From Obrimoposthia wandeli (lineage: Eukaryota): 64,000 nucleotides of DNA. Every line of letters begins with the position of its first letter. Positions within the stretch are counted from its first letter, which is position 1. This document shows, piece after piece, positions 1 through 38,674 of the stretch. Both the position numbers and the translations under genes were made by a program. The stretch spans positions 1-64,000 of the forward strand of contig CDROCS010005497.1 of assembly GCA_977020255.1 (NCBI GenBank), written 5' to 3'. The notes under the pieces were generated by a model. That model saw only the letters and a list, made by a program, of their open reading frames with translations, had not been told where the DNA came from and searched no databases.

Positions 1-560
1 AAAACTTAGGAATCTGAATTCAGACTTTCGAAGAAAATGTCGTAGACGTTGGTTCAATTCACAAACATCAGGGGGCTCATCACCAAGCATTCTCAGGAAC
101 GACTTAGACACTAAAGCCACGGAACATGGAGTAGTTTATCCCCTAGCTTCAGCCCAAGATGACAAACCAAACTTTTAGGAATTATGGCAAATCGACTCAG
201 GAGATCTGTAATGTAGCTCACTATGAGTACAGAGTTGCAAATGGAACATTAGGTACAGATTTAAAAATACGTACAAGGAAGATGTGAAGCAATCATTATT
301 CAGGATACTAGTATCTCAGCAGTAGAAACTCTATTAAATGTATCTCAAGCAGCTTACAAGATAAAGAAAAAGAACTCAACCTTATCAGAAAAACAAACTG
401 AACTTGCCACAATCTACTCTAGAACAGGTTTCAAAACCTTTTACAGACACAATTAGACCTGAAAATGTAAAAGAAAGCAGCTACAGCTCAACACCACCCC
501 ACCATCTTGGAAAGGTGGTACAAGTAAGACTCTATCAACAATCGTAAACAACCCGTCTAG
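1..560 (+). pseudogene. 3' part of an unidentified gene, broken by frameshifts (probably assembly indels)
   Basis: A coding-like stretch can be read in pieces (e.g. VANGTLGTD..YVQGRCEAIIIQDTSISAVETLLNVSQAAYKIKKKNSTLSEKQTELATIYSRTGF) but no continuous frame exists; end coordinate approximate. Confidence 0.3.
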
Positions 561-574
561 TTGACAGAGGAAAC

Positions 575-756
575 ATGAACAGCTAACTTTAGCTGAGAAG
601 GTAAACTACTTACTAACATTAGACAAAGTCTACTATGGGGACCATATAACGCTTACAGACTATACAACATTAACCGAAACTGAAATCAAAGAAAGTATTG
701 ATGACACTTGGGAACTAATAGAGGAAGAATTAGCCCATACCTTTAGAAACTACTAA
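575..756 (+). pseudogene. small hypothetical gene, frameshifted
   Basis: GAGG RBS then ATG at 575; a long open stretch in a shifted frame ends at TAA 754-756. Confidence 0.3.
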
Positions 757-874
757 CCTAACTCGGGCAATGATTGAAGCATTAGTATCATATGGAGTTG
801 CAAGAGCAACCCTAATAACAGCTCCAGACTATCAAATAGCTAGCTGGTATACAAACTCACTATAAGGAACCAAT

Positions 875-1663
875 ATGCTACACTATTACGACCCCGAGAA
901 AACTAAATTCTACAGACAATTCGAGATCCAAAGAAAACAAGAAAACCAGAAGAATTTGTGCTCCTTCATCAGCCTTACTAAGCCTACGAAACCTGTTATC
1001 AGACTATGAAATCATGTTCCGTAATCTTGCAATAATGAATAACAGAAATTTTCCATGGTTTCGCTTAAGAATCGTAACATTGTAACGTGCAGAGCCACAA
1101 AGGTTTTTCAAAACACAATTACTATGGACATCTCAAACTGTTTTGACTCAATAACAAGAGAAATGCTTGAAACTAAGATAATAGCAAAACTGCTACCAGC
1201 AGAGAAGTTTTCCATAAGAACAATAGCTTAGCACAAGGTTTTTGCAACATCACCAATATTAGCCAACATCTACCTAATAGCACCTATCACGGTCTTAAGA
1301 AAGATGAGTAGCTAAACTTGTAGAATAGACTTTTTCCCTAACATGTTACGCAGATGATATACATATTAGTACAAATTGCATAGATGAAGGAAAGCTAGGC
1401 TTAATCAACAGATGGTTATCTACATCTTTCGCTTAATATAAGTTGATAGTAAACAACTAAAACAAAGTAGCCTACACTAGAATTTGGTAATAGAAGAATC
1501 TTAGGAATACAAGTTGGAGACTATACACTAACTCCATCTAGAAAACTCAAGAAGAAAAATCCGAGCAGCCGTCTACCAAAAACAATGGACCATCTCTAGG
1601 AGGACTAGTTACAGCTTCAAAAGATGTATCTACCCAAACTTTTAGAGACAAGAGAAACAATAA
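875..1663 (+). CDS. retron-type reverse transcriptase, ~260 aa, frameshifted in this assembly
   Basis: AAGGA RBS, ATG 875. Frame-stitched motifs occur in the correct order: FYRQFEI-(P)KK..RRICAPS, FHGF(R)..NRNIVTC..HKG, TMDISNCFDSIT (~1120-1155), LAQGF-ATSPILANIYL (~1228-1278), YADDIHIS (~1346-1369), RILGIQVG, PSRKLKKK(I)RAAVYQ, TAA 1661-1663. Confidence 0.88.
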
Positions 1664-1671
1664 GCCCTATA

Positions 1672-1911
1672 AGCGAGTGCTTAGTAAGGGGAGTATATAG
1701 AAATAAGTACTTAACAAGACTATGAATATAGTGAAGCAGTTCGAATCGGCTGTGTAACAATTGCTATATTTATGATAGTTTTGGGCAAAAGCCCAACTAT
1801 CACCTACGCTTCATCTCCAGTGATCTCTGGTAAACAGGGCCCTCAGGCCCCTGGCATCCAGATCTACGCCGACGCTGTCAAGTATATATACTCTCTCATT
1901 AAGCACTCACT
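1672..1911 (+). ncRNA. retron-like msr/msd ncRNA unit 1
   Basis: Terminal inverted repeats 1672-1699 / 1885-1911; TAG at 1698-1700; conserved motif 1736-1760; ATAGTT..AACTAT hairpin 1774-1801; further hairpin ~1822-1864. Confidence 0.8.
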
Positions 1912-2217
1912 AAGTTAACAGCGAAGCACTAGATAGACATAAAATTAACGCTATGTTCTTATTAGTAGCTCGTTTCGGCTATGTAACCAACGATACGAAT
2001 AAGATAGTTAAACCAAAATGATCTAGTTCAAATATTCTCCGAATATATGATCCTAGATCATAAAGGAATAACTATCTACAGAGACCAGCATCAAAGCTGG
2101 TTAGCACGTATCTAGTGTTTCGTTAAGCTAACACCAACAATTATTTTACTGAAGCACCTATTAGAAATTAAATAAACTAAGAGTACTTTGGAGCAGTTCG
2201 AATCGGCTGTGTAACAA
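1735..2217 (+). repeat. three-copy direct repeat at ~228 nt period (AGCAGTTCGAATCGGCTGTGTAACAA)
   Basis: Identical 26-mers at 1735-1760 and 2192-2217; an 18/23-identical copy at 1965-1987. Confidence 0.92.
1914..2132 (+). ncRNA. retron-like msr/msd ncRNA unit 2
   Basis: Terminal IR 1914-1935 / 2109-2132; TAG 1934-1936; variant motif GTAGCTCGTTTCGGCTATGTAAC from 1965; long hairpin AGATAGTTA..TAACTATCT 2002-2077; hairpin ACCAGC/GCTGGT 2085-2102. Confidence 0.8.
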
Positions 2218-2346
2218 CTGATTTACTTATAGTTTAGCGCTCCGCGTGCTACCAGGACCCAAGGGTCTAGATCCACCGCGCAAAACTATTACCTGAGGAC
2301 CGTATCCGTCTTCCAGAAGGTAATAAGGTGTTTCAGTAAGATAATT
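2139..2346 (+). ncRNA. retron-like msr/msd ncRNA unit 3
   Basis: Terminal IR 2139-2163 / 2321-2346, paired throughout with 2 G-U and 1 bulge; TAG 2162-2164; motif 2193-2217; hairpin ATAGTTT..AAAACTAT 2229-2289; second hairpin ~2288-2323. Confidence 0.8.
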
Positions 2347-2360
2347 ACAAAAGGAATAAC

Positions 2361-2559
2361 ATGGAAGATTTTGAAAACAAGAATTAAGTATAGGTGACAA
2401 GTAGCATTCATCGGAGGCTGGAGTGGAAGTAGTATTTACTTAAAAGAAGGCTATATAGCAAAAATAACCTCTAAACGAATAATAGTAGCAGATAATAACT
2501 ACGATACAGAGTATACTACCCCTGTTAAACCAACTCGAATAGTAAAACTAACGCAGTAA
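2361..2559 (+). CDS. small hypothetical protein (~65 aa), frameshifted in assembly
   Basis: AAGGA RBS, ATG 2361; stitched read MEDFENK..SIGD.VAFIGGWSGSSIYLKEGYIAKITSKRIIV...IVKLTQ*; TAATG overlap with the next gene. Confidence 0.5.
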
Positions 2560-2944
2560 TGATAACTTTACCAATCTACTGGACAAACATTAAAGTACAA
2601 TTAAATCCACTACTCACTTAGTAGGAAGAGAATTTTTTAAAACGCTCAATTTTCATGTTAAGAATAAGATGAAAAAGACTATACTGAATTAGTCGCAGCT
2701 CAGAAAGATAACCTTTCACCACTAGAGAGGCCATTTGATTACGTATGTAGTATACTAAGAACCCTTCAATGGATGCTAGTAATGTTGCCTCTAAGATAGA
2801 AAAATTCTATTTAGATGCACTCCAACATATAGGAATTATCCCTGAAGATAATGTGAAGTACCATAAGAAATCAACTTGGATCGTTGGGGGTCAAGATAAA
2901 GACAACCCAAGACTGGAAATATTTATAAAGGAGTTTGAGAATGA
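2559..2944 (+). CDS. RusA-like Holliday junction resolvase/endodeoxyribonuclease, frameshifted
   Basis: MITLPIYW start; the intact part reads DASNVASKIEKFYLDALQHIGIIPEDNVKY, matching the RusA D-x-x-N..K..DAL..G..DD-like pattern. Track ORF 2769-3020 appears to fuse this gene to the polymerase start through an indel. Confidence 0.6.
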
Positions 2945-3761
2945 TCAAGCCTACAACAAACATATCAAACATCTTGATGCCTCCAAAATAGCAGTCTGGG
3001 ACATTGAAGCAGAGAACTAATCCCTAAACAAGGGCCATTAGAGTGTAAACCTTATCTTCTGTAACCATATAAAAGTTAATGCAGAACCTTTAAAGAGATT
3101 CACATACTTATGGCATCCAACATCCTCAGGCAATCTTAAAGGGGCAAACAATCTTATAAACTCCTGTGAATTCATGGTTGGTCACAATATCATTAACTTT
3201 GATATCACAGTAATTGAAAACAAGATAGGTAAGCTTACACCTTATCCCTTAGACACTCTACTAATAGCCAAACTTATGTACACTTCCGATGAGCTCCTCT
3301 CAATGGATATCGGAATCAAAGATATGCCCTAAAGAAGCCTTATGGGACGATACTCATTAAAAGCTTTCGGTTACAGGTTCAAATCTAACAAGATAATCTT
3401 CGAACAATTTGACAAGATGACTGATGACATGCTTGATTACTGCGACCAAGATGTGTTATTAACTTTTAAGTTATTCACACACCTACGTTCTATGCCAAAC
3501 TTTCCCTCAATGGAAACTATCCATTTAGAGAACCAAGTAGCTAATATCATAAAATACCAAGAACAAGCAGGTTTTTACTTCAACATCGAAGCAGCCCGAA
3601 AACTCTACACAGAAATGCGTTTCGAACAAGGTACAATCGAACGAAGACTAAAGAAAAGGTTCCGTCCTATGTTTTTACCCGACGGTAAGCCTAAAGAAAC
3701 TAACAAACTAATAAAAAGAAAAATCTACACGGAGGACACAAACTATGGCATTAACATCTAG
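2941..3761 (+). CDS. DNA polymerase family A, N-terminal polypeptide (3'-5' exonuclease domain); 5' half frameshifted
   Basis: AAGGAG RBS before ATG 2941; ExoI VWDIEA, ExoII VGHNIINFDI, LDTLLIAK, YSLKAFG, ExoIII YCDQDV, then LENQVANII..QEQAGFYFN; stop at 3761. Confidence 0.8.
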
Positions 3762-4629
3762 CGTATGGGAAGACAATCCTTACTCATACAGACAAAACAC
3801 TACAGCAGTTGCTACTTCCCTTCAGGGCCAAAGATACAACTATGCAGGTGATGCCAACGTATTCGAGGCAGATACCTACAGCACAGAAGAGTTAAACAGT
3901 ATACACGTCCCAGAACGACTATTTCAACATGCAATGACTAATGGAGTACAATTTGGATCAAGAGCTCTAGGAGTACACACCGACGAAAGTGATTACGACG
4001 TAGCTATGCTCTATGAAGACTATATAATGCTAAACTCTAAGTTTGAAGCTTTTGCCTCAATCTTAGACAAACACTCAGGAGATATTGGAAAATATTCTCG
4101 AAACGAGCCTGAACATGGCTTCCATACATTAATTCGTAAACTACTTATAAAGTTAGATACAAGTTGTCTAGAAACAACTCACACTGCGAGACTAGATATT
4201 CTAGTAGTAAAAACCGAAGAAGATTTAGATGTAATTCGATCAGCTATTCAGGATATTCGCAACATACCTTCTTATATCCTTTCTCAAAAAAAACTTCGTA
4301 TAGAGCTATACCAATCAGCCTTATATGAGCGTGGTTGGCGAGAAGCTACAAGAAGACGTCACGTTCGTGGTAGACCAGACCGAGTTATAGGTCAACGAAT
4401 AAACAATGGAATAGAAGCACTACATAGACAGGCTTTTCAAGCTCAGGATATAATTCCTGGTGAAGTGCCTCTACCTATAAGACCTTACGGGACAGGTACT
4501 CTAGAGGATCAACAGAGTATTCTTGAAAGCCAAGCAGACAGATTAACACTTGTACAGGAAAGTCTACGTAGACATCAGGTAGCTAGAAACTCTCCTCCAA
4601 TTTTATCAGCCTCAGATGCAGTTTTCTAA
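3745..4629 (+). CDS. Pol beta-superfamily nucleotidyltransferase inserted within the DNA polymerase gene
   Basis: FGSRALGVHTDESDYD (GS-x10-DxD) plus a later RLDILVV acidic residue; GGAGG RBS; overlaps both polymerase pieces. Confidence 0.7.
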   Translation: MALTSSVWEDNPYSYRQNTTAVATSLQGQRYNYAGDANVFEADTYSTEELNSIHVPERLFQHAMTNGVQFGSRALGVHTDESDYDVAMLYEDYIMLNSKFEAFASILDKHSGDIGKYSRNEPEHGFHTLIRKLLIKLDTSCLETTHTARLDILVVKTEEDLDVIRSAIQDIRNIPSYILSQKKLRIELYQSALYERGWREATRRRHVRGRPDRVIGQRINNGIEALHRQAFQAQDIIPGEVPLPIRPYGTGTLEDQQSILESQADRLTLVQESLRRHQVARNSPPILSASDAVF

Positions 4630-5256
4630 TGCAAAAATATTCTTTACGTCCCTATAGAAGACCAACTTCTTATTTCAAAAACGGACGAATAAAACTCCCA
4701 GCCAAGAACAAATATAAATGGTTCTCAACTCCGCACTCTCTCCATTATGAGTACAAAAATGGAGAATACCAGCCAATCAAACTTACAAAGTTCGACGCAA
4801 CTGATAACCAAATAAAAGTCTGGTTAAAACGTATGTATAACTTCTCCTTCCAAACCTTCACGGACAAAGGTAACGTAAAAGTAGACCGAGACCAACTCGA
4901 ATCCTTAGGAGACTATGGGAAAGATCTAAGACGATACCTTAAGCTTAAGAAAGATATGTCCCAGCTAGGTGGAACAGATAACTCACTAATAGCCTCATGC
5001 TTACCTTCCGACCAATCAATCCATGGTCGAGTAGATACAATTGGAGCAGCAACACACCGTTGCACCCATTCGTCCCCAAACTTAGCTCAAATACCCTCCG
5101 ATGGAGCATTCCGAGGACTATTCACAACCCCTCCAGGTTACACACTCATTGGTGCCGATTTAGCTAACATAGAGATCCGAGTATTAGCCCACTATCTAGC
5201 AACATATGATGGCGGAGAATATGCTAAAGCCGTACTATCAAAAGATATGCACTGGT
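4629..5256 (+). CDS. DNA polymerase family A, C-terminal polypeptide, exon 1
   Basis: IHGRVDTIGAATHRCTHSSPNLAQIP; motif A LIGADLANIEIRVLAHY; ends KDMHW at the intron 5' splice site. Confidence 0.9.
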
Positions 5257-6455
5257 TAACGACTTGTAATTATTAACTCCTTAAGAGTTATTTGATGAAA
5301 ATACTCAAATGATAGAATACCTCTTAATGATAGAAGAATTACAATGTTACAGCCACGCTACACAGTAATGTGTAGATGATAAATCCATTAATTGCTGGAA
5401 ACTCTCGTAAGGTCTCAGATACCAAAGTGTAACAATTCTGAGAATAGAGACAATCAGCAGCGAGGATAATTACCCAGCCAATCCTACATGGAGAAGCTGG
5501 CTTTAAGCTTTATTACAGTATAATTAGTAATAAAGGATTAAGAATATGAAAAGATGGACACAAGATATGTTACCACTAGAGATAGTTCAAGACTTAGGTC
5601 TTATCTATGCTACGGACAAAAGCGCAAATAAGTCTCGATACATGATATTTAAATGCAGCTGCTGTTCAAATACCTTTAGATCTGAACCTTCTAAAGTACT
5701 AAGTGGAGCAAAAAGTAAGTGCTACATGTGTGTAAACCCTAAACTACTAGACGTAACAACAGGGAAGAAGCCATGTGGGACATGTAAAGAAAGTAAAGAT
5801 TCTAGTGAGTTCTATGCTAATAAGGCTAAGAAAGACCTGCTAGACAGTAGATGTAAGGTATGTGCTGATACATACAAAATATCATGGATTAAAAAGAATC
5901 CAGATACTGTTGAAAAGTATATATCAGACAGAGAAAATGCTAGACTCTTAAAAAGGTATGGTATCACCACTGATGAATACAATGTAATAGCTACTAAGCA
6001 GAAGCATTGTTGTAAAATCTGTGGTAATACTGCATCTCAAGGTAGAGCTCGCTCTAAGTTCCTTAGTGTTGACCATTGTCACACAACTGGAACTATACGA
6101 GGCTTACTCTGTCAAAAGTGTAACACTGGTATTGGACTGCTTGGTGATACACACTCTTCTTTACTTAAAGCTTTAGAATATCTTGAACCTCATAAGTAAT
6201 TATTCCGTTCAACGACTATCCCTTCGGGGAGTACACTCAAGTGAGTGGAAACATGGATTACCCTGTAATGGGTAAAGATATAGTCTAGTCTACATGGAAA
6301 CATGTAGGAGTTATGTACTTAAGTGAGAACACTTAAGAAGTGTTAGAGATCTCACGGAAGCACACTATGAACGTAGACCCTTTTCGAAATAGGGACTAGT
6401 GTTCTCAATTAAGTACATAACCGGCATGAACTAACGACTCGTGTTGAATATAACG
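5257..6455 (+). mobile_element. group I intron (IA2-like) in the DNA polymerase gene
   Basis: P AATTGCTGGAA ~5390, Q AATCAGCAG 5452-5460, R GTTCAACGACTA 6207, S AAGATATAGTCTA ~6275; P3 AATCCAT/ATGGATT. Exon ends in U (5256), intron ends in G (6455); splicing restores the in-frame read DMHW-YHAKLAG...ARTQSKGFFFGYLYG. Confidence 0.9.
5546..6199 (+). CDS. intron-encoded homing endonuclease, endonuclease VII-like (His-Me finger) with Zn-finger N-terminus
   Basis: CKICG...LSVDHCHTTGTIRGLLCQKCNTGIGLLGD; several CxxC pairs; lies between Q and R of the intron; own TATAAT (5519-5524) and AAGGA RBS. Confidence 0.9.
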   Translation: MKRWTQDMLPLEIVQDLGLIYATDKSANKSRYMIFKCSCCSNTFRSEPSKVLSGAKSKCYMCVNPKLLDVTTGKKPCGTCKESKDSSEFYANKAKKDLLDSRCKVCADTYKISWIKKNPDTVEKYISDRENARLLKRYGITTDEYNVIATKQKHCCKICGNTASQGRARSKFLSVDHCHTTGTIRGLLCQKCNTGIGLLGDTHSSLLKALEYLEPHK

Positions 6456-7219
6456 ATCACGCAAAACTAGCAGGATTCTGGACTGAAGATGACCGAGATT
6501 GGCCAGATGACGCTCATGCAAGTGACCGTACTCCCGCTATGAAACAAGCCAGAACCCAATCTAAAGGTTTTTTCTTCGGTTACCTTTATGGACAAGGATC
6601 AACTATACGTGGCCACACATTATGGTACGATGGCTGTCTAGGAGAATATGATCAGAAAGAATACAACATAGCCAAAAAAGCTATTGAACGTAGACTCAAG
6701 AAAGTAGAAGGTCAATTCCTCTTCCCTCTTAAAAAGGACGAATACGTTGAATACGAAGAACTACTGATCCTAAAAACAATCTATGGTAAACGAATAGCTG
6801 ATACTTTCCTAGAGAAATTAACAGGTATTAAAGAGCTCATAGAAGACTGTAAAGAGCAATCCAAATCCAAAGGTACAATCACAGGAATAGATGGTCGAGA
6901 GCTCTACAGTAGGTCTCCACACTCTGCCCTGAACCTTTTATTACAAGGCTCTGCGGGAATCGTAGCTAAAAAATGGATGGTAAACTACCATGCACTGGCC
7001 TACGAGAACAAACTAACAAATGGCAGAGGTAATGATTTTTATCAGATGGCTTACATCCATGATGAATTCCAAGTAGCCTGCAAAGACACCCCTGAAAAAG
7101 TCAAAATCCTATGCAACTGCCTAGAACAAGGTGCTGCTATGGTGACAGACCAATTTAATTTCAAAATACAAATCAAAGCTGATGCTGGAGCAGGGGAAAC
7201 TTGGGCCCAAACTCACTAA
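6456..7219 (+). CDS. DNA polymerase family A, C-terminal polypeptide, exon 2
   Basis: Motif B RTQSKGFFFGYLYG, ALNLLLQGSAG, motif C YIHDEFQ, ends GETWAQTH; in frame with exon 1 after splicing. Confidence 0.92.
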
Positions 7220-7228
7220 GGAAATAAC

Positions 7229-7381
7229 ATGTCCTACACAAAAGAAGATATTAATGGTTATACTGTATATAGAAACCTTTACAGCGGACTATACAATGTA
7301 ACTCGAACTAAGAAGCCTATATCACAAAGAATATCCTATAATAGTATGAGACTTCTTGTTGATCTTAGTGCAAATATTTAA
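7229..7381 (+). CDS. hypothetical protein (50 aa)
   Basis: AAGGA RBS, open frame MSYTKEDINGY... Confidence 0.5.
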   Translation: MSYTKEDINGYTVYRNLYSGLYNVTRTKKPISQRISYNSMRLLVDLSANI

Positions 7382-7398
7382 CCCATTAAGGAAACACT

Positions 7399-7515
7399 AT
7401 GAACCAATGCATAAAATGTGGCAGAAACTACTTCGAGCCATACTGCGCAACCTGTAAACTAACAATACCACCTAAATCTACTTTTAGACTTTCTAGTTCA
7501 GGAGAGCCAAAATGA
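7399..7515 (+). CDS. small Cys4 zinc-finger-like protein (38 aa)
   Basis: AAGGA RBS; MNQCIKCGRNYFEPYCATCK. Confidence 0.45.
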   Translation: MNQCIKCGRNYFEPYCATCKLTIPPKSTFRLSSSGEPK

Positions 7516-7703
7516 CAGTAGAAGTACAAGCAGTAATAACAGTAGTATTTAGCTTAATCTCATTCATTTCCACTATCTGGTGGATTCAAATCTACAAAGC
7601 AGATCAAAAAGGATACTGTGCGGGCCTAGGCTCACTCATGGCTATAGGCTTATTTGGTATCCCTAATCTACTTATGTGGTTAATATACTTCATAATATAC
7701 TAA
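7512..7703 (+). CDS. small membrane protein
   Basis: Two hydrophobic segments; GGAG RBS. Confidence 0.6.
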   Translation: MTVEVQAVITVVFSLISFISTIWWIQIYKADQKGYCAGLGSLMAIGLFGIPNLLMWLIYFIIY

Positions 7704-7901
7704 TAGAGAACACCTCCATAAAGTGAACCTTGAAAAGAATTAGGTCGGAGCTCATAGGTCGACAAGTTGGGATAAGAGTTCCTTGTATACAACATTACGT
7801 CGTATATTCTACACCTTATCAATAACGTCCATAGGTAGCACCTTTAAACTTGTAAACCGTGAAAGCGTAGTCGTCCCTAGAGACTTAAAACCTAGGACTA
7901 T

Positions 7902-7973
7902 GGGGACTTAATTCAGTTGGTAGAAGGCTAGGTTTATCCCGTGCAGTCACTGGTTCAAACCCAGTAGTCCCCA
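7902..7973 (+). tRNA. tRNA-like element with non-pairing anticodon arm (identity unassignable)
   Basis: Acceptor GGGGACT/AGTCCCC, D-loop AGTTGGTA, T-arm ACTGG-TTCAAAC-CCAGT; anticodon stem CTAGG/CGTGC does not pair; no encoded CCA. Confidence 0.55.
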
Positions 7974-7989
7974 GCAACAAATTACAAAT

Positions 7990-8112
7990 GCAATAGCCGT
8001 ACAACTAGAGAGTACACCAGGAGACTTGAAAATGGTCTGTTAACATTAGGTATACTGGCAAGCAGAAAGAGAAATCTGCCTATCGTTGGTTCAAATCCAA
8101 CCTATTGCTCCA
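7990..8112 (+). tRNA. tRNA-like element, 123 nt, with enlarged anticodon domain and long variable arm
   Basis: Acceptor GCAATAG/CTATTGC, encoded CCA 8110-8112, D-stem GTAC/GTAC, T-arm GTTGG-TTCAAAT-CCAAC, variable hairpin GCAGA/TCTGC; CCAG/CTGG encloses 34 nt instead of a normal anticodon loop. Confidence 0.55.
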
Positions 8113-8273
8113 AGCAGAAACCAGCCAGAGATAGTTATAACAACTGTAGTGAGTTGAAAGCTTCCATAAGTAACACTAACTATTGGCGTTATGTGGTGGG
8201 CCTCGTGCCTTTCATAGTAACGAAAAATAAGCCCTTATGACTATCGTTGGGTGGTTTCACCTAAAGGAATACA

Positions 8274-8459
8274 ATGCTAACACTAGATAATCTTAATACA
8301 CTTAAAGAGTGCCTAAAATACCTAGAAACCAGAACAGTCTCTAAAGGATACTGGAAGAAAGAGAAGGAAGTATTAGATAAGCTTCACAAGAAGCAAGAAC
8401 AAAGAAGAAACCTTATAGAGCCTTCACCAGAATCTGAACATAAAACCTTCACAATCTAG
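8274..8459 (+). CDS. hypothetical protein
   Basis: AAGGA RBS, 61 aa ORF. Confidence 0.6.
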   Translation: MLTLDNLNTLKECLKYLETRTVSKGYWKKEKEVLDKLHKKQEQRRNLIEPSPESEHKTFTI

Positions 8460-8574
8460 CCTTAACAGCCACAGTAATATGCATAGTTATTTCTCGTGGC
8501 ATATTAGTACTCAACAGCGCAAGCTTGCCTACTATGACACCGATGGCTGAGTATGACCACCTTAAGGAGCCTTA

Positions 8575-9528
8575 ATGGCAAACCACAAGAAGACAAAAAA
8601 GATTTTGAACGACAACTGGAAGACCATTGCCAAAATGCGAGACGAAGGCACTCCTATTGGAGCTATTGCTAGAAAGTATAAAGTTTCCTACCAAGTACTA
8701 TTTGCAAGGTTCCAGAAGAGGTCTATTAAGCCACTAGTTGAGTCAAAAGTACCTAGAACACTAGTCCTAGATATAGAAAATGCCCCTATGCTTAGCTATC
8801 ATTGGGGACTTTGGCAGCAAAACATCAACAAACAAATGAGAGTCGAAGACAATCGCTCATACATGATGTCAATCGCAATGAAGTGGTTAGGAGAAGATCA
8901 AATATTCTACTTTGAAACTCGTTCAGAAGATGACTCTAAATTACTTAGAAAGCTTATGCCTTTCCTAGAAGAAGCAGATTTTGTTATAGGCCACAACGCA
9001 AAGAAATTCGATATAAAGAAGATCAACGCTTACGCTATCCTAAATAATCTCAAACCACCTTCACCCTTCAAAGTAATTGACACAATGCTTATAGCCAAAC
9101 AGCAATTTGCATTCGAACGTAATACCCTAGAATACCTAACAAACAAACTATGTACCGAAACGAAGTCCTCTCATGGAAAATTCCACGGATTCGAATTATG
9201 GTCAGAATGTATGAAAGGTAATGAAGAAGCTTGGACAGAAATGAAGCACTACAATATCCAAGATATTATAGCTACTGAAGAACTATACCTTAAACTTCGT
9301 CCTTGGGCCAAAGGTCACCCTAACATGGTAACAACATCGGATTCCCTAAACAAGAAATGTACTGTATGTGGTTCAAGAAAGATACACAAACACGGGTTTG
9401 TAAGAACAAACGTAAGTAAGTTCCAACAATACAAGTGTGAAGACTGTGGAGGATTCTCTCGAGGTAGAAAGAACTTACTTTCAAAAGAAGTACGTTCAGT
9501 CCTACTAACAAGTATTCCAAACAGCTAA
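8575..9528 (+). CDS. RNase H-fold 3'-5' exonuclease with N-terminal HTH-like region and C-terminal Zn ribbon
   Basis: LVLDIENAP, IGHNAKKFDI, IDTM, YNIQDI; CTVCGS...YKCEDCG. Confidence 0.85.
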   Translation: MANHKKTKKILNDNWKTIAKMRDEGTPIGAIARKYKVSYQVLFARFQKRSIKPLVESKVPRTLVLDIENAPMLSYHWGLWQQNINKQMRVEDNRSYMMSIAMKWLGEDQIFYFETRSEDDSKLLRKLMPFLEEADFVIGHNAKKFDIKKINAYAILNNLKPPSPFKVIDTMLIAKQQFAFERNTLEYLTNKLCTETKSSHGKFHGFELWSECMKGNEEAWTEMKHYNIQDIIATEELYLKLRPWAKGHPNMVTTSDSLNKKCTVCGSRKIHKHGFVRTNVSKFQQYKCEDCGGFSRGRKNLLSKEVRSVLLTSIPNS

Positions 9529-9530
9529 CA

Positions 9531-9965
9531 AAATCATTGGCAGTATCATCTAGATGAAGAAAACATGATGCCTAAGCCACGAAGTACTATAAGTTCATCA
9601 CTTAACTAGTCGGAAATAGCCAATGAGATTTAACTCCTGTAGAAGTATAAACTACACGTCAAAGCACGGTGGCGATTCCGGGAGAGACGTTAAACTTAGT
9701 TACTTGCCACGCCGTAAAACATCCTTCTCACGAGGGAAAGTCCTTGGGCAAGACTTACAAACAATAAATATTTATGAGACCTAGCTGGCGACCTTAAACT
9801 AGGTCTTAGTAAGTATTTTATCAGGTAAAGTGTAACTATATGCCTTCAAACCCCACGACAGATGATGTATTAAAAGGGAGTAAACGACTATAACACAGCA
9901 CAAGCTAGAGTTTCAGTGACTCTTTACTCCGTATTGGCGTACCTGAGAGACAGGGCTTGTGCTTA
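9531..9965 (+). ncRNA. putative structured ncRNA(s) of unknown family
   Basis: ~450 nt without a + strand ORF, with several long stems: AATCATTGGC/GCCAATGAGATT, ACGGTGGCG/TGCCACGCCGT, TGAGACCTAG/CTAGGTCTTA, AGCACAAGC/GCTTGTGCT. Confidence 0.45.
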
Positions 9966-9988
9966 CAACTTAACATAAAGGACAAACA

Positions 9989-10192
9989 ATGTTAGCAATA
10001 CTTGGATGGTTAGTAATAGTACTAGCGAGTAGCTGGGCTACCTTACTAGTTATAATAAGTTGTATATTTTCAGGAGGACCACTAGAGGCTCTAAAACATG
10101 AACCAATAGCGGTAATTCTAGTAAGCACACTAGCAGTGATAGGCTGGTACTATGTAATAACAGTAGCACCTTTCACAATGACAATAACTTAA
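9989..10192 (+). CDS. small membrane protein
   Basis: Two hydrophobic helices; AAGGA RBS. Confidence 0.6.
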   Translation: MLAILGWLVIVLASSWATLLVIISCIFSGGPLEALKHEPIAVILVSTLAVIGWYYVITVAPFTMTIT

Positions 10193-10284
10193 GGATAAAT
10201 AATGACAATAATATCAGAAATAATACTACCAGGCTTAATTGTTGGGACCTTCATTACCTATATCTACTGGCCGGATAAGCAACT

Positions 10285-11253
10285 ATGAAGCCAGAGTATT
10301 TAGCAAAGAAGTTACTCCCTAAAGGAGCTAAACTCATATACTTAACAGAGTATGGTTCAAAGCTATATGGCACTAACTCCGACGCCTCTGATACAGATTT
10401 CAAAGGTATATTTCTACCTTCATTAAACTCTATTATCCTAGGTACAGATATTGACACAATAGATTCAACAACAGGAAAAGAAAACTCAAAGAACACTTCT
10501 TCCGACATAGACATTACACTCTACTCATTACAAAAGTTCTTCAAACTAATCCGCAAAGGGGAGACAGGAGCATTAGACTTACTATTCTCTATGAACTCGC
10601 CCTCAAAAGTAAAAACTAGTCCAATCTCCAAAGAAATCTACCGAAACCACAAATCCTTAGTAAGCTCAAACTCACATGCCTTCATCGGCTACTGTATGGG
10701 ACAAGCTTCTAAGTATGGAATCAAAGGTTCCCGCTATGGAGATTTACTCTCCTTCAGCAAATATCTAGACAAATTCGATGATCCATTCTCATTAGAAGAA
10801 CCAGCATCAACTCTAAACATAGAAACATTCACATACATACTCCCAATTCAACGTCAAGAACAGTCCTATATCTCAATCTTAGGAAAACTATACCCTCTTA
10901 CACGTCCAATCCGAGCAATCAAAGAACTAGTCACATCAGAACTATCTCGATACGGTGACAGAGCTAAAGCTGCTAACTCCGGAACAGATTGGAAAGCATT
11001 ATCACACGCATTACGAGTAATATACCAGCTAAAAGACCTTGCCTTAACAGGCACAATAACATTTCCAATACCATCTGCTAGACAAGTAATGGACATCAAA
11101 TACAACTCAGACGAATCTGATCTACAACACATTCTAGACAAAATAGCCTCAGAAATTACAAAGACAGAACAAATACTAACAACATCCAACCTAAAACTAA
11201 ACGTAAACAACGACCTTATTGACCAATTAATCCTTAAGGCTTACAAACTATAA
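10285..11253 (+). CDS. predicted nucleotidyltransferase (Pol beta superfamily, phage NrdC.11/RlaP-like)
   Basis: YGSKLYGTNSDASDTDFKGIF; DITLYSLQKF; DWKALSHALR. Confidence 0.85.
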   Translation: MKPEYLAKKLLPKGAKLIYLTEYGSKLYGTNSDASDTDFKGIFLPSLNSIILGTDIDTIDSTTGKENSKNTSSDIDITLYSLQKFFKLIRKGETGALDLLFSMNSPSKVKTSPISKEIYRNHKSLVSSNSHAFIGYCMGQASKYGIKGSRYGDLLSFSKYLDKFDDPFSLEEPASTLNIETFTYILPIQRQEQSYISILGKLYPLTRPIRAIKELVTSELSRYGDRAKAANSGTDWKALSHALRVIYQLKDLALTGTITFPIPSARQVMDIKYNSDESDLQHILDKIASEITKTEQILTTSNLKLNVNNDLIDQLILKAYKL

Positions 11254-27069: not shown

Positions 27070-27236
27070 AAAACATAATGATATCAATAGGTATCACATT
27101 TACGATCATATTTACATGTATCCTGACTGTGATTACCTTATACGTTTCATACATCCTAGCAATAGGTGTATTTATAATAGGACTAGGCACAATAGTGTAC
27201 CTAATCCTTACTTACGCTAATAAAGTCGATACGTAG
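27066..27236 (+). CDS. small membrane protein (56 aa)
   Basis: ATGA overlap with the previous gene; almost wholly hydrophobic. Confidence 0.5.
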   Translation: MKNIMISIGITFTIIFTCILTVITLYVSYILAIGVFIIGLGTIVYLILTYANKVDT

Positions 27237-30200
27237 TATCTTTTATTAGTGCAGGTGTTCCCACATTGATCAAGTGATCCCATGGACTATATATTGGAAT
27301 AACACTTCTAGAGTCATCCCATGCTCTTAAGAACATACTCTGATCCTGTACTGTGTCAAAATCCACTAAAAACGACTGACCTAGAACTGCAAGTGAGGCA
27401 TTAAGGGGATGACCAGTTGTCATATCTGTAAGTACTTTCTGAATTCTCTTCGTATACTTAGTAAACATAATTGGTCCCATCTTATTTAAGTACTCTTCCC
27501 CTCTTGATGAAGGTTTGTCATAGTTTATAAAAGCATTAAGTAAGGCGTTATGTCTTTGCACTTTAGCCAGACTTAAAAATACTTTCTTTTCACGGCCAGT
27601 CATGGCATCAGGTACTCTGCTACCTTTTAGTACTCCCTGTGTAAGTTCTTGTGTAACTACACCTTTTAGAGGACCTACATACCCATCTACCTTAGCAGAT
27701 GCTAATTCATCTAACCACCAAGTAGGCACTCTCTTTCCACCTTTAACTACATCTTTCTCTTGAAGTTTCAACTTTCTATTCATCACATCTCTCGCAATTA
27801 AATCAGACATCTGCAATACTTCTTGATTAAATTGATACCACTTAGTATTCTCTGTTAAGAACATGATATCAGTCCCATACTTTACAAATCCAGGAGCTTT
27901 AGCCATCTTATCCTCTACAATCTTCTTCCACTTATTAGTACTTCGTAAGTCTGCAGTATCTACATCTTCAACTAACGCCTGATAAAGTCCTAGTTCCATC
28001 AATTCATTAATTTCACTCTTCTTCATCTGAATTCCAAGTAACTTCAACTCAGCACTCTCTTTTCTACTAAGTATACCAGAACTTTTCTTAATCTCTAAAG
28101 CATAAGCTCTTCTGTGATCTTTAATATACCTTCTAGTATCTTGAAAACTCTCAGTATACATCTTCAGTAATGTAATAGGACTTGTCCCTGTCATTACCGC
28201 ATATAAGAAGTTACTCACAATATTCTGTACAAGTACGAAAGGCATCTTCATCAAGATATTAGTCTTAACTATCTTCATCATTTCCATCCACATACCCTCC
28301 GCCATCTTAATCAATGACCTAAGTACTTGTGGAGTTACTTTCTCTAGTCCAGGAATATCAGTAATACTTAGATGCTTATAACCAAAGTATGCGTGTTGTA
28401 GTGTTGCTGGAACAGCTAATACTTTATCATCTCTATCATAAGCTGCTTGCTTAAACATATGAGGCAACATATCAAATATCTCTTTCATCTTTGGATCAGA
28501 AACGTTAGGTCCAACAGTAACATACTCAGTCTTCATATCTATACCAACATTACTCCCAGGCTTATAGTTATTAGCCATATCATCCAATATAGTCTGTAAA
28601 ACTTGAGTATTATGCTCATCAGTATAAACTTTATCTTCAACAGTACCATAAGATCTTCCAACAACCTCCCCAATAGTAGTATCTTGGTTTAATAAAGACT
28701 TCTTAGCTTTCTTATCCATCATATATCTATAATCAACAGTGTTACCTTCATCATCAATAATAGGAGCTACTCCAGTCTCTATATTATCTGGATTATAAGT
28801 ACCATTAACCATTTTAGCAGCTTCTTTCCTACTAAGCTCATCAAAGATAATCTTCTGTCTTTCACCTCTTTCTTGAGAGTAATTTCCTTGACCTGAAGAG
28901 TATAGTTCTTTAAGTGAAGTACCTTTAGCACCTTTCTTATTAAGTCTTACAGCAGTCCTTAATCTCTCACTAACCTCAAACGATTTAGTCACATATAAGC
29001 TCATTTCTTTAGGCCTATTCTCCGCAGAATGTGTATTAAGTACTTTCTTCCATTCATACCCTGCAGCTTCCATCTTCGCTCTTTCAGAAGTAGGAGCTAC
29101 TTGCATAGTCATAGTATCATCAAATAATTCTCTACTATATCCTTTAACAAAGTGAGTAGTATTACCATCAAACAACTTCTTTCTAGACTGATTAACAAAT
29201 CCTCTCGCAATCCTAACAGTATTCGTAACAGCCTCTGGATCCTTGTCATACAACTCTTTAAACGCTTTCTTTTGCCTAGTATCAGTATTCTCTAGTGCAG
29301 TTAACGTAGCTATATCATCAATCAATCTCATAACTGCTTTATTAGCTTTTCTTCTCATTCCACTATGTACTCCTCTAGCAATAGTATAAGAATTAAAGTT
29401 CTGAGCTAACGAAGCAGCACCAGTAGCCATATAAAACCCAAGTCCATGTGCTTGATTAGTGTTCCAGTTATAGTTATCTTTATCTGCTAATAATAATTGA
29501 TGCTTTACTCGTCCAATCTCAGTCCGTAGCTTATCTTTATCTAATAGCATATCTTTAATCTTCTTAGCTGTATACCTATCCCAAATACCTTGTATATCCG
29601 TATCTAAGATAACTGCTGTCATAGCTTCTTCTTCATACTTTGTAGGTAATTCTTTGAACTTATGTAACAGATTACCCTTAGCAGCCTGAATATACGCCAT
29701 TCTAGATGCATCAATCTTACTTGCAGCTAATCCTAGCCATTCAACAGCTTTCTCCATATCCGTAGCTTCAGTAAAGTCCCTAAGAACATTTCTAATCAGC
29801 CCTTCTGGCTGAATGCCAATCGTAGTAGCTACCATACCTGCAATAGCTCTATAATTACTATTAGTTGACATTCTCCACATACTTCTAGCTAGCCACATAG
29901 CTTTCTGTACCTTACTATCATTAGGCATTTTACCTACAGGCTTATCATCCTTAATATACTTAGTAAAGATCCCGTGCAACTTCTCAGCAATAGCATCATC
30001 AATATCATTAATAACATTCATCACAGCATCACTAATTCCACCCTTGTACGCTAGCTCAATATTCTTCTTAGTATTTATCTCTCCAAGTTTCCATGTTAAA
30101 TCCAATACTTGCTCATAAGCTGTTCGATTTCTCTCACTAAACTTATAATTACCTAGAATAGTGTTAACTACATCTTCAAAGAAGTTAGCTATCTTATCTC

Positions 30201-31320
30201 TCCAATTTTCACCAGTACGTGTATTTTTAAGAGGAACTCTAGCCAACTTAGCCATCAATTCTTTATTCGTAAGTGCATGAGCAATAAACTCATCAAGAGC
30301 AGTATCCCCTTCAAACACATACTTATACCTAGCTCTAGCCGCTTTTTCTTCTTCAACAGGGTCAATACTTACTTCAGGAAGGAAAGTTTTCCAATTAAGT
30401 CCATCCAGTAGTGCTTCTCTCATAACATAATCAAGCTCTCGTTTAAGTTTATTAGCTTCAGGTAACCCACTATTTAATGCCCACTGAATCATAGTATGTA
30501 TAACTTCATGAGAGTACGTCTCTGCTTCACTCATTTGGTTACCATATGCCTTAGGAGAGTTATTAGTTGTAATACCTACTCTACTACTCTGTACAATCCC
30601 CATCGGATCTCTTTGAGCACCTTCTTTTATAAATAAAGTCATCTTTTCAAAAAACTCTGGACTCATCTTACCAAGTAAGCCTTTAAGGTACTTCACATGT
30701 CCTACATCTTCTTTCTTACCACCTAACTCATGAATAGTGTCCAACATATTTTGCATATTACTAATATTACCTATTAAGTTATGCTCAACTCTATCAGCAT
30801 TCTCCCAGTCAAAAGGGTTAGCTTTTCCTTCTTTAGTGTTACCATAAGCCTCAATATGTTCTTCTAAGTTCCTAGAAGTATACTCTCCCATTCCCCTAAC
30901 AACAACATATTTTCCAGACTCTGTCTGAGTACTTCTATCTTGTCCCATAAGAAACTTCCAAGTCCCTTTATTAGTCACAACCTTAATATACTCTCCATCA
31001 CTAGTTACATTCTTAATAACTTGATTTTGAACAGAGTTACTCCCATTAAATGCAACAGGAATAGTTGTACCAAACTCTTGACGTAAAGTATTAGCTAATT
31101 CATTATCAACCATAGACTCATACTGAGCAATAACAGCATCCACTGCTTCTTCATCTTTAGCTTTTGTAGCTTGAGAAAGCTCTTTAAGAGTACTCATTGA
31201 CTCTTCTACACTTACTCCATTATCATCTACAGTGATGCCATCATCTAGCATCTCCTGTAATCTTTTGTACTCATTACTTATTTCTTCATTAATGCTTGAC
31301 AGTGAACAACTGTTACCCAT
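27217..31320 (-). CDS. large virion (ejected) protein with zincin-like HExxH motif; resembles the C-terminal third of N4-type vRNAP polyproteins
   Basis: 1367 aa; ETYSHEVIH...DEFIAHALTN; own AAGGA RBS; starts 19 nt after the vRNAP-like gene. Confidence 0.6.
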   Translation of the reverse strand: MGNSCSLSSINEEISNEYKRLQEMLDDGITVDDNGVSVEESMSTLKELSQATKAKDEEAVDAVIAQYESMVDNELANTLRQEFGTTIPVAFNGSNSVQNQVIKNVTSDGEYIKVVTNKGTWKFLMGQDRSTQTESGKYVVVRGMGEYTSRNLEEHIEAYGNTKEGKANPFDWENADRVEHNLIGNISNMQNMLDTIHELGGKKEDVGHVKYLKGLLGKMSPEFFEKMTLFIKEGAQRDPMGIVQSSRVGITTNNSPKAYGNQMSEAETYSHEVIHTMIQWALNSGLPEANKLKRELDYVMREALLDGLNWKTFLPEVSIDPVEEEKAARARYKYVFEGDTALDEFIAHALTNKELMAKLARVPLKNTRTGENWRDKIANFFEDVVNTILGNYKFSERNRTAYEQVLDLTWKLGEINTKKNIELAYKGGISDAVMNVINDIDDAIAEKLHGIFTKYIKDDKPVGKMPNDSKVQKAMWLARSMWRMSTNSNYRAIAGMVATTIGIQPEGLIRNVLRDFTEATDMEKAVEWLGLAASKIDASRMAYIQAAKGNLLHKFKELPTKYEEEAMTAVILDTDIQGIWDRYTAKKIKDMLLDKDKLRTEIGRVKHQLLLADKDNYNWNTNQAHGLGFYMATGAASLAQNFNSYTIARGVHSGMRRKANKAVMRLIDDIATLTALENTDTRQKKAFKELYDKDPEAVTNTVRIARGFVNQSRKKLFDGNTTHFVKGYSRELFDDTMTMQVAPTSERAKMEAAGYEWKKVLNTHSAENRPKEMSLYVTKSFEVSERLRTAVRLNKKGAKGTSLKELYSSGQGNYSQERGERQKIIFDELSRKEAAKMVNGTYNPDNIETGVAPIIDDEGNTVDYRYMMDKKAKKSLLNQDTTIGEVVGRSYGTVEDKVYTDEHNTQVLQTILDDMANNYKPGSNVGIDMKTEYVTVGPNVSDPKMKEIFDMLPHMFKQAAYDRDDKVLAVPATLQHAYFGYKHLSITDIPGLEKVTPQVLRSLIKMAEGMWMEMMKIVKTNILMKMPFVLVQNIVSNFLYAVMTGTSPITLLKMYTESFQDTRRYIKDHRRAYALEIKKSSGILSRKESAELKLLGIQMKKSEINELMELGLYQALVEDVDTADLRSTNKWKKIVEDKMAKAPGFVKYGTDIMFLTENTKWYQFNQEVLQMSDLIARDVMNRKLKLQEKDVVKGGKRVPTWWLDELASAKVDGYVGPLKGVVTQELTQGVLKGSRVPDAMTGREKKVFLSLAKVQRHNALLNAFINYDKPSSRGEEYLNKMGPIMFTKYTKRIQKVLTDMTTGHPLNASLAVLGQSFLVDFDTVQDQSMFLRAWDDSRSVIPIYSPWDHLINVGTPALIKDTTYRLY

Positions 31321-31338
31321 ACTTACATCCTTTTATCT

Positions 31339-32613
31339 TTATTGTTTACAGATCTTAATCTTATTAATTACATTCCCTATTGTAGCATCATTTCCTTTAG
31401 AAGCAGCTTTAGCAGTCTTAGGAGGTACCTTAGCTAACTCCTTTAGGACAACTTCAACGTCACTTCCATAGTTTGCTTGAAATTGATTATCATCTGCACT
31501 TAATGGTTCACCTGTTGCTATCTTAGTGGCAACTTTACTCGCCATACTTTTTCTTTCTGCTACAGTCATCTCTCTCCCATTGTCAGGAGTTGTTGCTTCT
31601 TCAGTAGTCCCAACCTCATAAACACTTTCAGGACTTCCAGCAGCATGCATAATAACAGCTCCTTCACTCTCGATAGTATTAAATAACTCAGTTCTTCTGG
31701 CCTGTACTTCTATATTTAGCTTAGTAATACCTTCAAGTGCTCTATTAAAATAATCACTTATCTTTAAAGAAACATCCTCTCCAAGCTCTTTATCATAAAC
31801 TTTAATCACAACATCATAAGCTTTGTTACCTTCAATCTCTGAAGCTACACTAGCCAACTTATCTTGAATACTCTGAATAATACTATACTCTTTGTTTACA
31901 TTAAAGAATCCCTTATTATATCCCTGTACAGCTTTGTCAGCATAAACTAATGGAGGCATAATAGCATCATGGATAACTGTCATACCCATTCCATTAACAT
32001 TTCCAATTGTAGCCGCTATAAGCGAGCCATCAATGTAATGTGTAGGAATAACAGAACCAGCACTAACTGCTGCTGCAAATTCTTTCATCTTGATAGATGC
32101 ATTACTAGTCTTACCAGTTAATCCAGTCTTCTTAACTTTATCAGTATTGATTAATGTATTAACTTTACCACTTCCATCTAACACAGAAGCTTCACTTACA
32201 ATATCAATTCCGTCTAACTCACCTTCCGAAAACGGTGCCTTAATTCCTGGAAACTTACTCTTAAGAGCTTTAACAATATCCATATGATCTTGTGTAGATA
32301 CATACCCATTCTTCTGACTGGCAGCTTCAAACATAGCTTGATACTCTACGTTATATACAGCAAACATAGCCTTAAAGGACTCATTTACCTTTTCTTGTGC
32401 TTCAATATATGGTCCAAACTGTTTAGTTAAGATACTTTCCATTTGTACCCCATACGACATGTCAATTAAATGCCCCAGGTAGTCATCTAAAGTCTCAAAC
32501 TGAGAGTTACCAGTCTTAATATCTTCAGGCTTAGTAGTTCTTATAGCTTTCTTAAGCCCTTCTAAGTCTGTTATCTTTTTTCCTTTAACAGTTAGATCTA
32601 GTTCATGTATCAT
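31339..32613 (-). CDS. virion RNA polymerase-like protein, C-terminal catalytic segment (T7-family motif C)
   Basis: IPTHYIDGSLI and TVIHDAI align with T7 RNAP PNFVHSQDGSHL / LIHDSF; continuation of the upstream gene across a frameshifted gap. Confidence 0.75.
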   Translation of the reverse strand: MIHELDLTVKGKKITDLEGLKKAIRTTKPEDIKTGNSQFETLDDYLGHLIDMSYGVQMESILTKQFGPYIEAQEKVNESFKAMFAVYNVEYQAMFEAASQKNGYVSTQDHMDIVKALKSKFPGIKAPFSEGELDGIDIVSEASVLDGSGKVNTLINTDKVKKTGLTGKTSNASIKMKEFAAAVSAGSVIPTHYIDGSLIAATIGNVNGMGMTVIHDAIMPPLVYADKAVQGYNKGFFNVNKEYSIIQSIQDKLASVASEIEGNKAYDVVIKVYDKELGEDVSLKISDYFNRALEGITKLNIEVQARRTELFNTIESEGAVIMHAAGSPESVYEVGTTEEATTPDNGREMTVAERKSMASKVATKIATGEPLSADDNQFQANYGSDVEVVLKELAKVPPKTAKAASKGNDATIGNVINKIKICKQ

Positions 32614-33522
32614 AGTTATAGCTAGAGCCTCATTAATATCACCTTTCTCAGACTTAAGAATACCTTTAGCACTGTTAAGTCATAGCTACCATTAATTGCT
32701 GTAACATCATGAAATAAAGACCAGTAAAGGATATTTAAATAATGTTCTAAGAGCACTAGATATTCCACCGTCAGAATCTTTCTATAATACATCTTTGGAG
32801 TTTTCCTTAGGATCTTCTGTTGAGTTATCTACTTAACTTAACTTCTTCTTTGAGGTCTTCTGATTATTGCTACTTCAGTTCTAATTTGTGAACTTTAACA
32901 TCTATGCTTGGTAGTTATCTTGCAACGACTTAGCATCACTTCTTCCCAGCAATATCATTCATACCTTGAGTTAATCGCTTGCATACTTGTATCTAAGAAC
33001 TTTTCACCAGTCCATAACTTTCATAAATACCATGCAATTCTGATAGTCTCTCCTAGAATAGGAATCTGTAATAATTTATTAGCAAACTGATAAATCGCAT
33101 CGCTACCTGTTAGTTGCAATGTGCTGCCTTCACTTTTCATACTCTCTGTATTGATCTTTGCACACAACATCAACGTCTGTAACATATGTGCAAAATGTTC
33201 TACTTTATACTTATGCTTAATTCCATCAATTTCTAATTTAATCTCTCCATCTTTAATAAGAGCTTCTTCTAATTTAGCAAGACTTTCAGTGTCACCATTA
33301 ACTGCCATCATCACAATCATAATGTACAATTTGATAGAAGCAAGTTTTCTTTGATCAATGTAAATCAATACCTTGAAAATAGCATACTGCATTTGTTTAG
33401 TAACATCTACAGATCCCTTACGAGTATCTCCAGGCTGCGTAACCCATTCAGTAGCCTCAACAGTTATATCTTTACCATTCTTCTTTAATCGTATAAATCA
33501 TTTATATGGCTGTATAATAAAT
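32614..33522 (-). pseudogene. frameshift-riddled middle segment of the vRNAP-like gene (probable assembly errors)
   Basis: Fragments such as SDAI..FANKLLQIPILG (motif A-like) appear in changing frames; no RBS-defined genes. Confidence 0.6.
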
Positions 33523-38566: not shown

Positions 38567-38595
38567 AAGTTCTCCATTTTCTATTATTATTTCTA

Positions 38596-38604
38596 ATAAT
38601 AACA
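38596..38604 (-). promoter_or_regulatory. extended -10-like promoter TGTTATTAT upstream of the vRNAP gene
   Basis: Same TGnTATTAT form as 40771-40779. Confidence 0.4.
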
Positions 38605-38674
38605 TAATAGGCCTTTATGTTAGCTTTAGGGGCTAACAAGGAATCTACTTGGTTACAGACATCCGAGAGGATGC

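Follow-up and report, generated by a model that had tools for sequence, protein, structure and literature searches.

Retrons (for example Eco1/Ec86, Sen2/St85 and Eco2/Ec67) consist of a reverse transcriptase (RT) plus an msr-msd ncRNA that makes msDNA, and they are known as bacterial anti-phage systems with one RT, one ncRNA upstream of it and an effector. The ncRNA is closed by long inverted repeats (a1/a2), which place the branching G next to the start of the template (Mestre et al., 2020), and the RTs carry NAXXH and VTG motifs (PMC7736814). That retron RNAs and products can depart from the classical layout has a precedent in the type VI retrons with a hybrid RNA (Retron-Vpa2, bioRxiv 10.1101/2025.10.22.683967). 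In the DRT2 and DRT9 defence systems a single RT is likewise dedicated to a structured ncRNA encoded next to it. Of a different nature are the hairpin promoters of the N4 virion RNA polymerase, of which N4 has three early copies with a 5-7 bp stem and a 3-nt loop formed on the template strand (PMC4496689). The locus studied here lies in the first 64,000 nt of contig CDROCS010005497.1 (assembly GCA_977020255.1), a stretch referred to as the window, which carries an N4-like portal, capsid and virion RNA polymerase. In it, three tandem retron-like RNA units follow a small RT gene. As in retrons, RT and RNA are adjacent on the same strand, each unit is closed by long inverted repeats, and a conserved stem-loop is followed by variable long hairpins. 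Most units also have a conserved G at the inner end of the 5' arm, a putative branching G inferred from sequence alone. In contrast to described retrons, the RNAs lie 3' of the RT and form an array of one to at least three diverged units, the RT has only about 260 aa and does not keep the NAXXH and VTG motifs, no effector gene is evident, and the carrier is a lytic-type N4-like phage rather than a bacterial defence island or prophage. Literature searches for phage-encoded or N4-like retrons, and for arrayed or downstream retron RNAs, found nothing that describes this cassette in the literature that could be searched.

The repeated motif and its three units

To verify whether the repeated motif reported in the preliminary description was real, the window was scanned for its occurrences (Table 1). 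The 26-mer AGCAGTTCGAATCGGCTGTGTAACAA was found twice and nowhere else in the 64 kb (2 matches at up to 3 mismatches; 0.00 expected), whereas the degenerate core TCGNNTCGGCTRTGTAAC matched three times, at 1741, 1970 and 2198 (0.02 expected). Start-to-start spacing was 229 and 228 nt. The string that had been given for unit 2 was present at 1965-1990, with the substitutions that had been claimed: C-G becomes U-A, U-G becomes C-G, and the loop changes from AAU to UUU. The distance from the conserved G to the motif start was 35, 28 and 28 nt, and that from the motif end to ATAGTT 14, 14 and 11 nt, which fits the ranges of 29-36 and 12-15 nt described earlier within a base or two. The observation of a conserved motif with compensatory changes and fixed spacing was therefore confirmed. 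Two corrections were needed. The inner CG/CG pairs, which had been described as kept, are formed in only 10 and 11 of 18 homologous units, other units closing the tip in a register shifted by one. In addition, ATAGTT can pair with a conserved ACUAU 5' of the hairpin as well as with the AACTAT downstream.

Each copy sits in a unit of about 210-240 nt bracketed by a long-range inverted repeat, and each unit folds into a closed structure far more stable than shuffles, with a better z-score on the + strand than on the - strand in all three. The motif is the tip of a longer hairpin (hairpin A), whose lower stem differs in sequence between units but stays paired. After hairpin A come one long, perfect, sequence-variable hairpin (B) and one or more smaller ones.

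Table 1. Positions of the features in the window and in related loci (L numbers). CM, covariance model; MFE, minimum free energy.
Feature	Position	Strand	Details
Region with broken frames	1-3345		every gene-like frame broken, mostly by single-base insertions
RT gene	875-1670	+	at least 10 frameshifts and 2-3 stop codons
Unit 1	1672-1911	+	MFE -84.3 kcal/mol, z -6.2; CM hit 80.4 bits
Unit 1, inverted repeat	1672-1688 with 1895-1911	+
Unit 1, closing stem	1675-1699 with 1884-1909	+	arm duplex -30.7 kcal/mol
Unit 1, conserved G	1700	+
Unit 1, hairpin A	1718-1780	+
Unit 1, apical motif, copy 1	1735-1760	+	exact 26-mer; columns 22-47 of the 18-unit alignment
Unit 1, hairpin B	1774-1801	+
Unit 1, ATAGTT	1775	+
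Unit 1, further hairpins	1807-1862	+
Unit 1, segments of the alternative pairing	1718-1801	+	equivalents in the other units
Unit 2	1920-2124	+	three inverted repeats; MFE -72.6 kcal/mol, z -9.4; CM hit 55.3 bits
Unit 2, inverted repeat	1922-1935 with 2109-2122	+
Unit 2, closing stem	1920-1935 with 2109-2124	+	the 12 pairs next to the G all pair
Unit 2, conserved G	1936	+
Unit 2, hairpin A	about 1948-2009	+
Unit 2, apical motif, copy 2	1964-1990	+	variant with compensatory C-G to U-A change; core 1970-1987
Unit 2, hairpin B	2002-2077	+
Unit 2, ATAGTT	2004	+
Unit 2, hairpin C	2083-2102	+
Unit 3	2139-2346	+	three inverted repeats; MFE -68.5 kcal/mol, z -5.8; CM hit 64.8 bits
Unit 3, inverted repeat and closing stem	2139-2159 with 2326-2346	+	by eye, 3' arm has one A more than a perfect complement of ...CACCUAUUA
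Unit 3, conserved G	2164	+
Unit 3, hairpin A	2173-2236	+
Unit 3, apical motif, copy 3	2192-2217	+	identical to copy 1
Unit 3, hairpin B	2229-2289	+
Unit 3, ATAGTT	2229	+
Unit 3, hairpin C	2287-2325	+
T7-type DNA polymerase A gene	2975-7219		in three pieces
Nucleotidyltransferase-like ORF	3745-4629		294 aa; separates the first two polymerase pieces
Group-I-intron-like insert	5277-6538		separates the last two polymerase pieces
Endonuclease VII/HNH ORF	5546-6199		within the insert
Rfam Intron_gpI hit	6164-6307		39 bits, sub-threshold; within the insert
Bases identical to the insert in the L015 RT	6275-6294		20 bases
tRNA-like sequence	7902-7973		45 bits in Rfam; not called by ARAGORN
Virion RNA polymerase region	27217-38605	-	four ORFs of 1367, 424, 444 and 1265 aa
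Stretch without a frame	32680-33020		340 nt; within the virion RNA polymerase region
L015, NAMPT and associated genes	267-3775
L015, three large upstream ORFs	5214-9279
L015, insert in the RT gene	9670-10620		HNH endonuclease gene (phrog_3377, E 4e-54)
L007, three large upstream ORFs	4809-7790
L021, segments of the alternative pairing	4320-4410
L022, NAMPT and associated genes	4787-7137
L025, diverged hairpin tip	5575-5640
L026, diverged hairpin tip	4345-4390
L027, tRNA-like sequence	about 4470-4545		between RT stop and single unit; GGTTCGATCC T-arm

The upstream reverse transcriptase and its cassette

To identify the gene preceding the units, its pieces were searched separately. The RT motifs are spread over three reading frames. 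In PADLOC the pieces hit only RT models, the type VI retron RT model being the only one that was hit by two separate pieces, whereas Pfam and PDB searches with the pieces and a tblastn search of the phage collection with one piece returned nothing. A full HMMER scan with a 62-aa piece found P0001 (70% identity), the N-terminal half of an RT, and P0005, an intact RT of 262 aa. For P0005 the 25 PADLOC hits listed (of 55) are all retron RT models, the best at E 8e-33 and 112 bits, with no better score on type VI than on other types, and no HTH or small toxin gene was seen next to the RT. The best NCBIfam model is the retron St85 RT at 100.7 bits, against 56 bits for the group II RT model and 28.5 bits for Drt2, and the best PDB sequence hit is the Retron-Kva2 RT. 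An AlphaFold2 model (pLDDT 90.5) has retron RTs as its first 12 Foldseek hits (TM 0.62-0.67), ahead of DRT2 and DRT9 at ranks 13-14 and of group II RTs, the DGR RT appearing only at rank 42. This places the family closest to retron RTs by profile, sequence and predicted fold. However, all retron HMM scores are below the family cut-offs (100.7 against 235 bits for St85), so that no known type can be assigned. The family comprises at least 168 proteins at E up to 1e-10, all metagenomic and without a name, some on contigs of 80-101 kb, with a median length of 259 aa in the 114 that were aligned. The consensus of these 114 has VTAAxKH, in which the A and H of NAXXH are kept but not the N, and RILGIQVG, with ILG instead of VTG. 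The cultured-phage collection had nothing closer than 28.6% identity.

To examine whether the RT and the units occur together, related loci were compared. In L015-L019, of which L015 is the closest relative, the order is the same as in the window: a 448-aa ORF, the RT, three units, a DUF7205 gene and then RusA. There the RT is interrupted after LAQG by about 950 nt holding an HNH endonuclease gene, which is probably an intron related to the group-I-intron-like insert in the polymerase gene of the window, although Rfam gave no hit at gathering threshold. That polymerase gene is continuous in the relatives L007 and L008, whereas in L006 it is also split at the first site. In eight further RT loci the RT stop is followed by a non-coding stretch of 148-1024 nt, which in L025 comes after an inserted ORF. 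Searches with nhmmer and then with a covariance model built from 18 units (the three of the window and 15 from other contigs) found hairpin A only 3' of the RT, in 9 related loci. The 18 significant hits, which are the training units of the model itself, all lie on the RT strand within about 1.1 kb of the RT stop, and only one weak extra hit (E 0.14) was obtained in 342 kb. They give one copy (L022, L023, L027, and L014 on a 992-nt contig) to three copies (window, L015, L020, L024) or more. Relatives that share the polymerase or the capsid but lack the RT have no unit, and none was found in the RT-less relatives L004-L009 and L012. Close relatives reached through the polymerase piece (L006-L009) and the cultured relatives PT11-V19 and AD45-P1 have neither RT nor unit, and L007 has the three upstream ORFs but lacks both. 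This indicates that RT plus units is an accessory cassette, found in many uncultured N4-like phages but in no phage record that could be searched.

No partner gene was evident. The genes downstream differ between loci, and the three large ORFs (about 430-650 aa) that precede the RT in most loci have no Pfam or PHROG family and also occur without the RT in L007, so they are neighbours rather than partners. Carrier phages encode NAMPT, an ADP-ribosyl glycohydrolase and a PRPP-synthetase-like protein close to the cassette, a gene set of the kind linked to NAD+ rebuilding by phages. Rfam searches gave no match to any retron or other RNA family on the units of the window, L015, L020 or L024. The tRNA-like sequence in the window has two mismatches in the anticodon stem and a loop of only six bases (UUUAUC). 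The AD45-P1 record flags a possible frameshift in its homologue of the virion RNA polymerase, which is split in the window. Exact-motif scans of viral, metagenome and genome contigs returned only chance matches in unrelated high-GC or eukaryote-like DNA; real homologues differ at one or more core positions, so these scans could not see them. Searches of viral contigs for loci related to P0005 or to the nucleotidyltransferase found nothing.

The RT cannot be read as one open frame in this window, and neither can its neighbours. The homologue of the L015 ORF, the RT, DUF7205, RusA and the first part of the polymerase exonuclease are all broken, in a genome that is otherwise densely coding and in which no such lesion was seen in the ORFs of the following 60 kb. 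An alternative genetic code for 1-3333 was rejected, as no single or double stop reassignment gives sensible ORFs and downstream genes end mostly in TAA; the stops are explained by frameshifts. Frameshift-aware alignment showed that the lesions are mostly single extra bases, often in or beside A or T runs, and by eye the in-frame stops in the exonuclease part also look like short out-of-frame stretches between paired shifts. After frame correction the RT is 65% identical to the L015 RT and keeps 62 of 67 family-invariant residues, against 65 of 67 in the intact L015 RT. This is not what long decay looks like, and it fits uncorrected base-calling or assembly errors, perhaps at a poorly covered stretch, or a very recent, local burst of insertions. 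No second copy of this phage was found, as two of its proteins are not on record and a 30-mer is absent from viral contigs. The same noise may affect the units, for instance the extra A in unit 3, and single-base details of the window units should be read with care; the conclusions rest on the homologues.

Covariation and closing stems

Covariation among homologous units had been proposed beforehand as a test of the RNA structure. In the 18-unit alignment 79.7% of cells are paired against 58.7% in shuffles, and the covariation score is 0.562 against 0.197; none of 500 shuffles reaches either value. Sliding the partner by 1-3 columns drops pairing to 33-41%. The outer apical pair, to which the preliminary description had pointed, is U-A in 11 units and C-G in 7, with none broken. 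The next variable pair is C-G in 8, U-G in 7 and A-U in 2, with 1 broken, and of the 13 lower-stem pairs 11 show changes on both sides. Invariant are AG on the 5' side, UC of AUCG on the 3' side of the loop, and an A in GUAAC. RNAalifold on the three window units alone gives 18 of 46 pairs with changes on both sides. G-U pairs are frequent (for example U-G in 16 of 18 at columns 28-35) and would be A-C mismatches on the other strand. L025 and L026, whose RTs are at 45-46% identity, carry a diverged tip (...UCGCCUCUGUUGAUAG...) in the same place, which hints that RT and RNA change together.

In most units a 5' arm of 20-25 nt ends ...UA immediately before a conserved G (UAG), and the 3' arm begins UA, preceded by G in 10 of 14 units; over all units the arms range from 14 to 25 nt. 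The 12 pairs next to this junction are 85% paired, against 53% when arms are re-dealt among units (maximum 66% in 758 derangements), and 8 of 16 closing-stem pairs show changes on both sides among the three window units. Arm duplexes are -24 to -33 kcal/mol in most units. This is the arrangement of a retron a1/a2 stem. The stretch between hairpin A and the 3' arm, the would-be template, is 71-153 nt and in most units richer in G+C than hairpin A. The exact fold is not settled, as ATAGTT can pair in two exclusive ways, with ACUAU 5' of hairpin A or with AACUAU 3' of hairpin B. In L021 the three segments are GAAGC, GAAGCUUC and GAAGCUUC instead, which keeps both options and suggests a switch, or a role for the DNA copy.

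Taken together, we consider it more likely than not that the three units are a tandem array of retron-like non-coding RNAs (msr-msd analogues) that serve the RT encoded just upstream, RT plus array forming an accessory cassette of uncultured N4-like, Alteromonas-phage-like podoviruses. What the analysis shows is the proximity of the RT family to retron RTs, the occurrence of hairpin A only directly 3' of these RT genes on the same strand, the upkeep of its stems by compensatory changes, the closing stem with its junction as described above, and pairing that works on the + strand only. The remainder is inferred, including RT binding, priming and cDNA synthesis. In this view RT and units would be transcribed together and each unit would fold on its own. 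The RT would recognize the conserved tip of hairpin A (an invariant AG on the 5' side and AUCG-G/U-C/U-U on the 3' side), prime from the 2'-OH of the conserved G, copy the variable hairpins C and B (71-153 nt) and stop at the conserved base of hairpin A (ACUAU with AUAGU). One phage would thus make up to three different RNA-linked single-stranded DNA hairpins, for which a decoy or counter-defence role is our guess. Whether the copy in this window works depends on whether its single-base lesions are real.

The interpretation given in the preliminary description, an msr-like element that binds the RT, was thus partly supported. Selected RNA structure is strongly supported, now across lineages and not only among paralogs, and the retron frame holds. 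The motif sits where msr stem-loops sit and is the most conserved sequence of the unit, so RT recognition is the most economical reading, although it is inferred from sequence alone. Parts of the picture need changing: the inner CG pairs are not conserved, the units lie downstream of the RT rather than upstream, and the RT is not open in this window.

Alternative readings and meaning

The alternative that survives best, though we think it unlikely, is that in this phage the cassette is a dead relic, the RT being a pseudogene and the units leftovers with no present function. This would agree with the broken frames, the intact homologues in L015 and closing stems that are slightly weaker than in L015. 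However, old decay would also have changed invariant residues and made many nonsense substitutions, whereas the lesions are almost all single-base insertions, and the units still fold well and show compensatory changes relative to L015.

Less likely still, the units could be structured RNAs that work without the RT, for example decoys or tRNA-like or Y-RNA-like RNAs, the motif being bound by another protein. GUUCGAAUC in units 1 and 3 resembles a tRNA T-loop, and the phage carries two RlaP-type nucleotidyltransferases of RNA-repair contexts. The tRNA-like reading was rejected, because the T-loop letters are not kept in unit 2 or in most homologues. There was no Rfam hit to tRNA, Y RNA or any other family even at E up to 10. 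An RT-independent RNA cannot be excluded, but it does not explain the strict co-occurrence with the RT in loci whose other neighbours differ, and the closing stem with a conserved G is the retron geometry.

It is also improbable that the RT uses the units by chemistry other than retron branching, such as DRT2-like template jumping between the two ACUAU repeats or DGR-like templating. ACUAU occurs on both sides of hairpin A plus hairpin B in each unit, and DRT2 and DRT9 are fold neighbours. The repeat-to-repeat distances are 77, 121 and 109 nt, however, none a multiple of three, the Drt2 profile score is much weaker, and here there are a closing stem with a conserved G and several units. Outside the masked RT-and-unit region (1601-2400) the window has no copy of unit sequence longer than 13 nt that could be a DGR target. 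A group II intron is not supported either, as no Rfam intron hit was obtained in 1-4000 even at E up to 10. N4-type hairpin promoters or another DNA-level cruciform, a lead suggested by three copies of a short conserved sequence with a small loop in an N4-like phage, are very unlikely, because N4 promoter hairpins form on the template strand, where the many G-U pairs would be A-C, folding is better on the + strand, the hairpin is about 30 bp with bulges and not 5-7 bp, it is tied to the RT gene and absent from RT-less relatives, and the window probably does not begin at a genome end, since the closest relatives have 100-104 kb genomes.

A further reading, which remains tentative and rather doubtful but is not excluded, is that lytic N4-like marine phages carry their own minimal retron, a 260-aa RT that reads an array of up to three or more different templates and makes several different branched single-stranded DNAs during infection, to be used against host defences or for the replication or recombination of the phage. 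That would be retron chemistry working for the virus rather than the host, with a multi-template layout not described before.

With respect to the retron layout of one RT, one upstream ncRNA and an effector, this cassette seems to differ on each count. It sits in the replication-gene region of lytic-type phages, its RT is among the smallest known and belongs to a large and entirely unnamed family, one to at least three diverged template RNAs follow it, and no effector is evident. A compact RT that naturally accepts several templates sharing one small recognition hairpin would also interest those who use retrons to make DNA in cells. If the units are reverse transcribed, phages would be making several defined single-stranded DNAs during infection, which raises a direct question about what these DNAs do, with counter-defence as one candidate.
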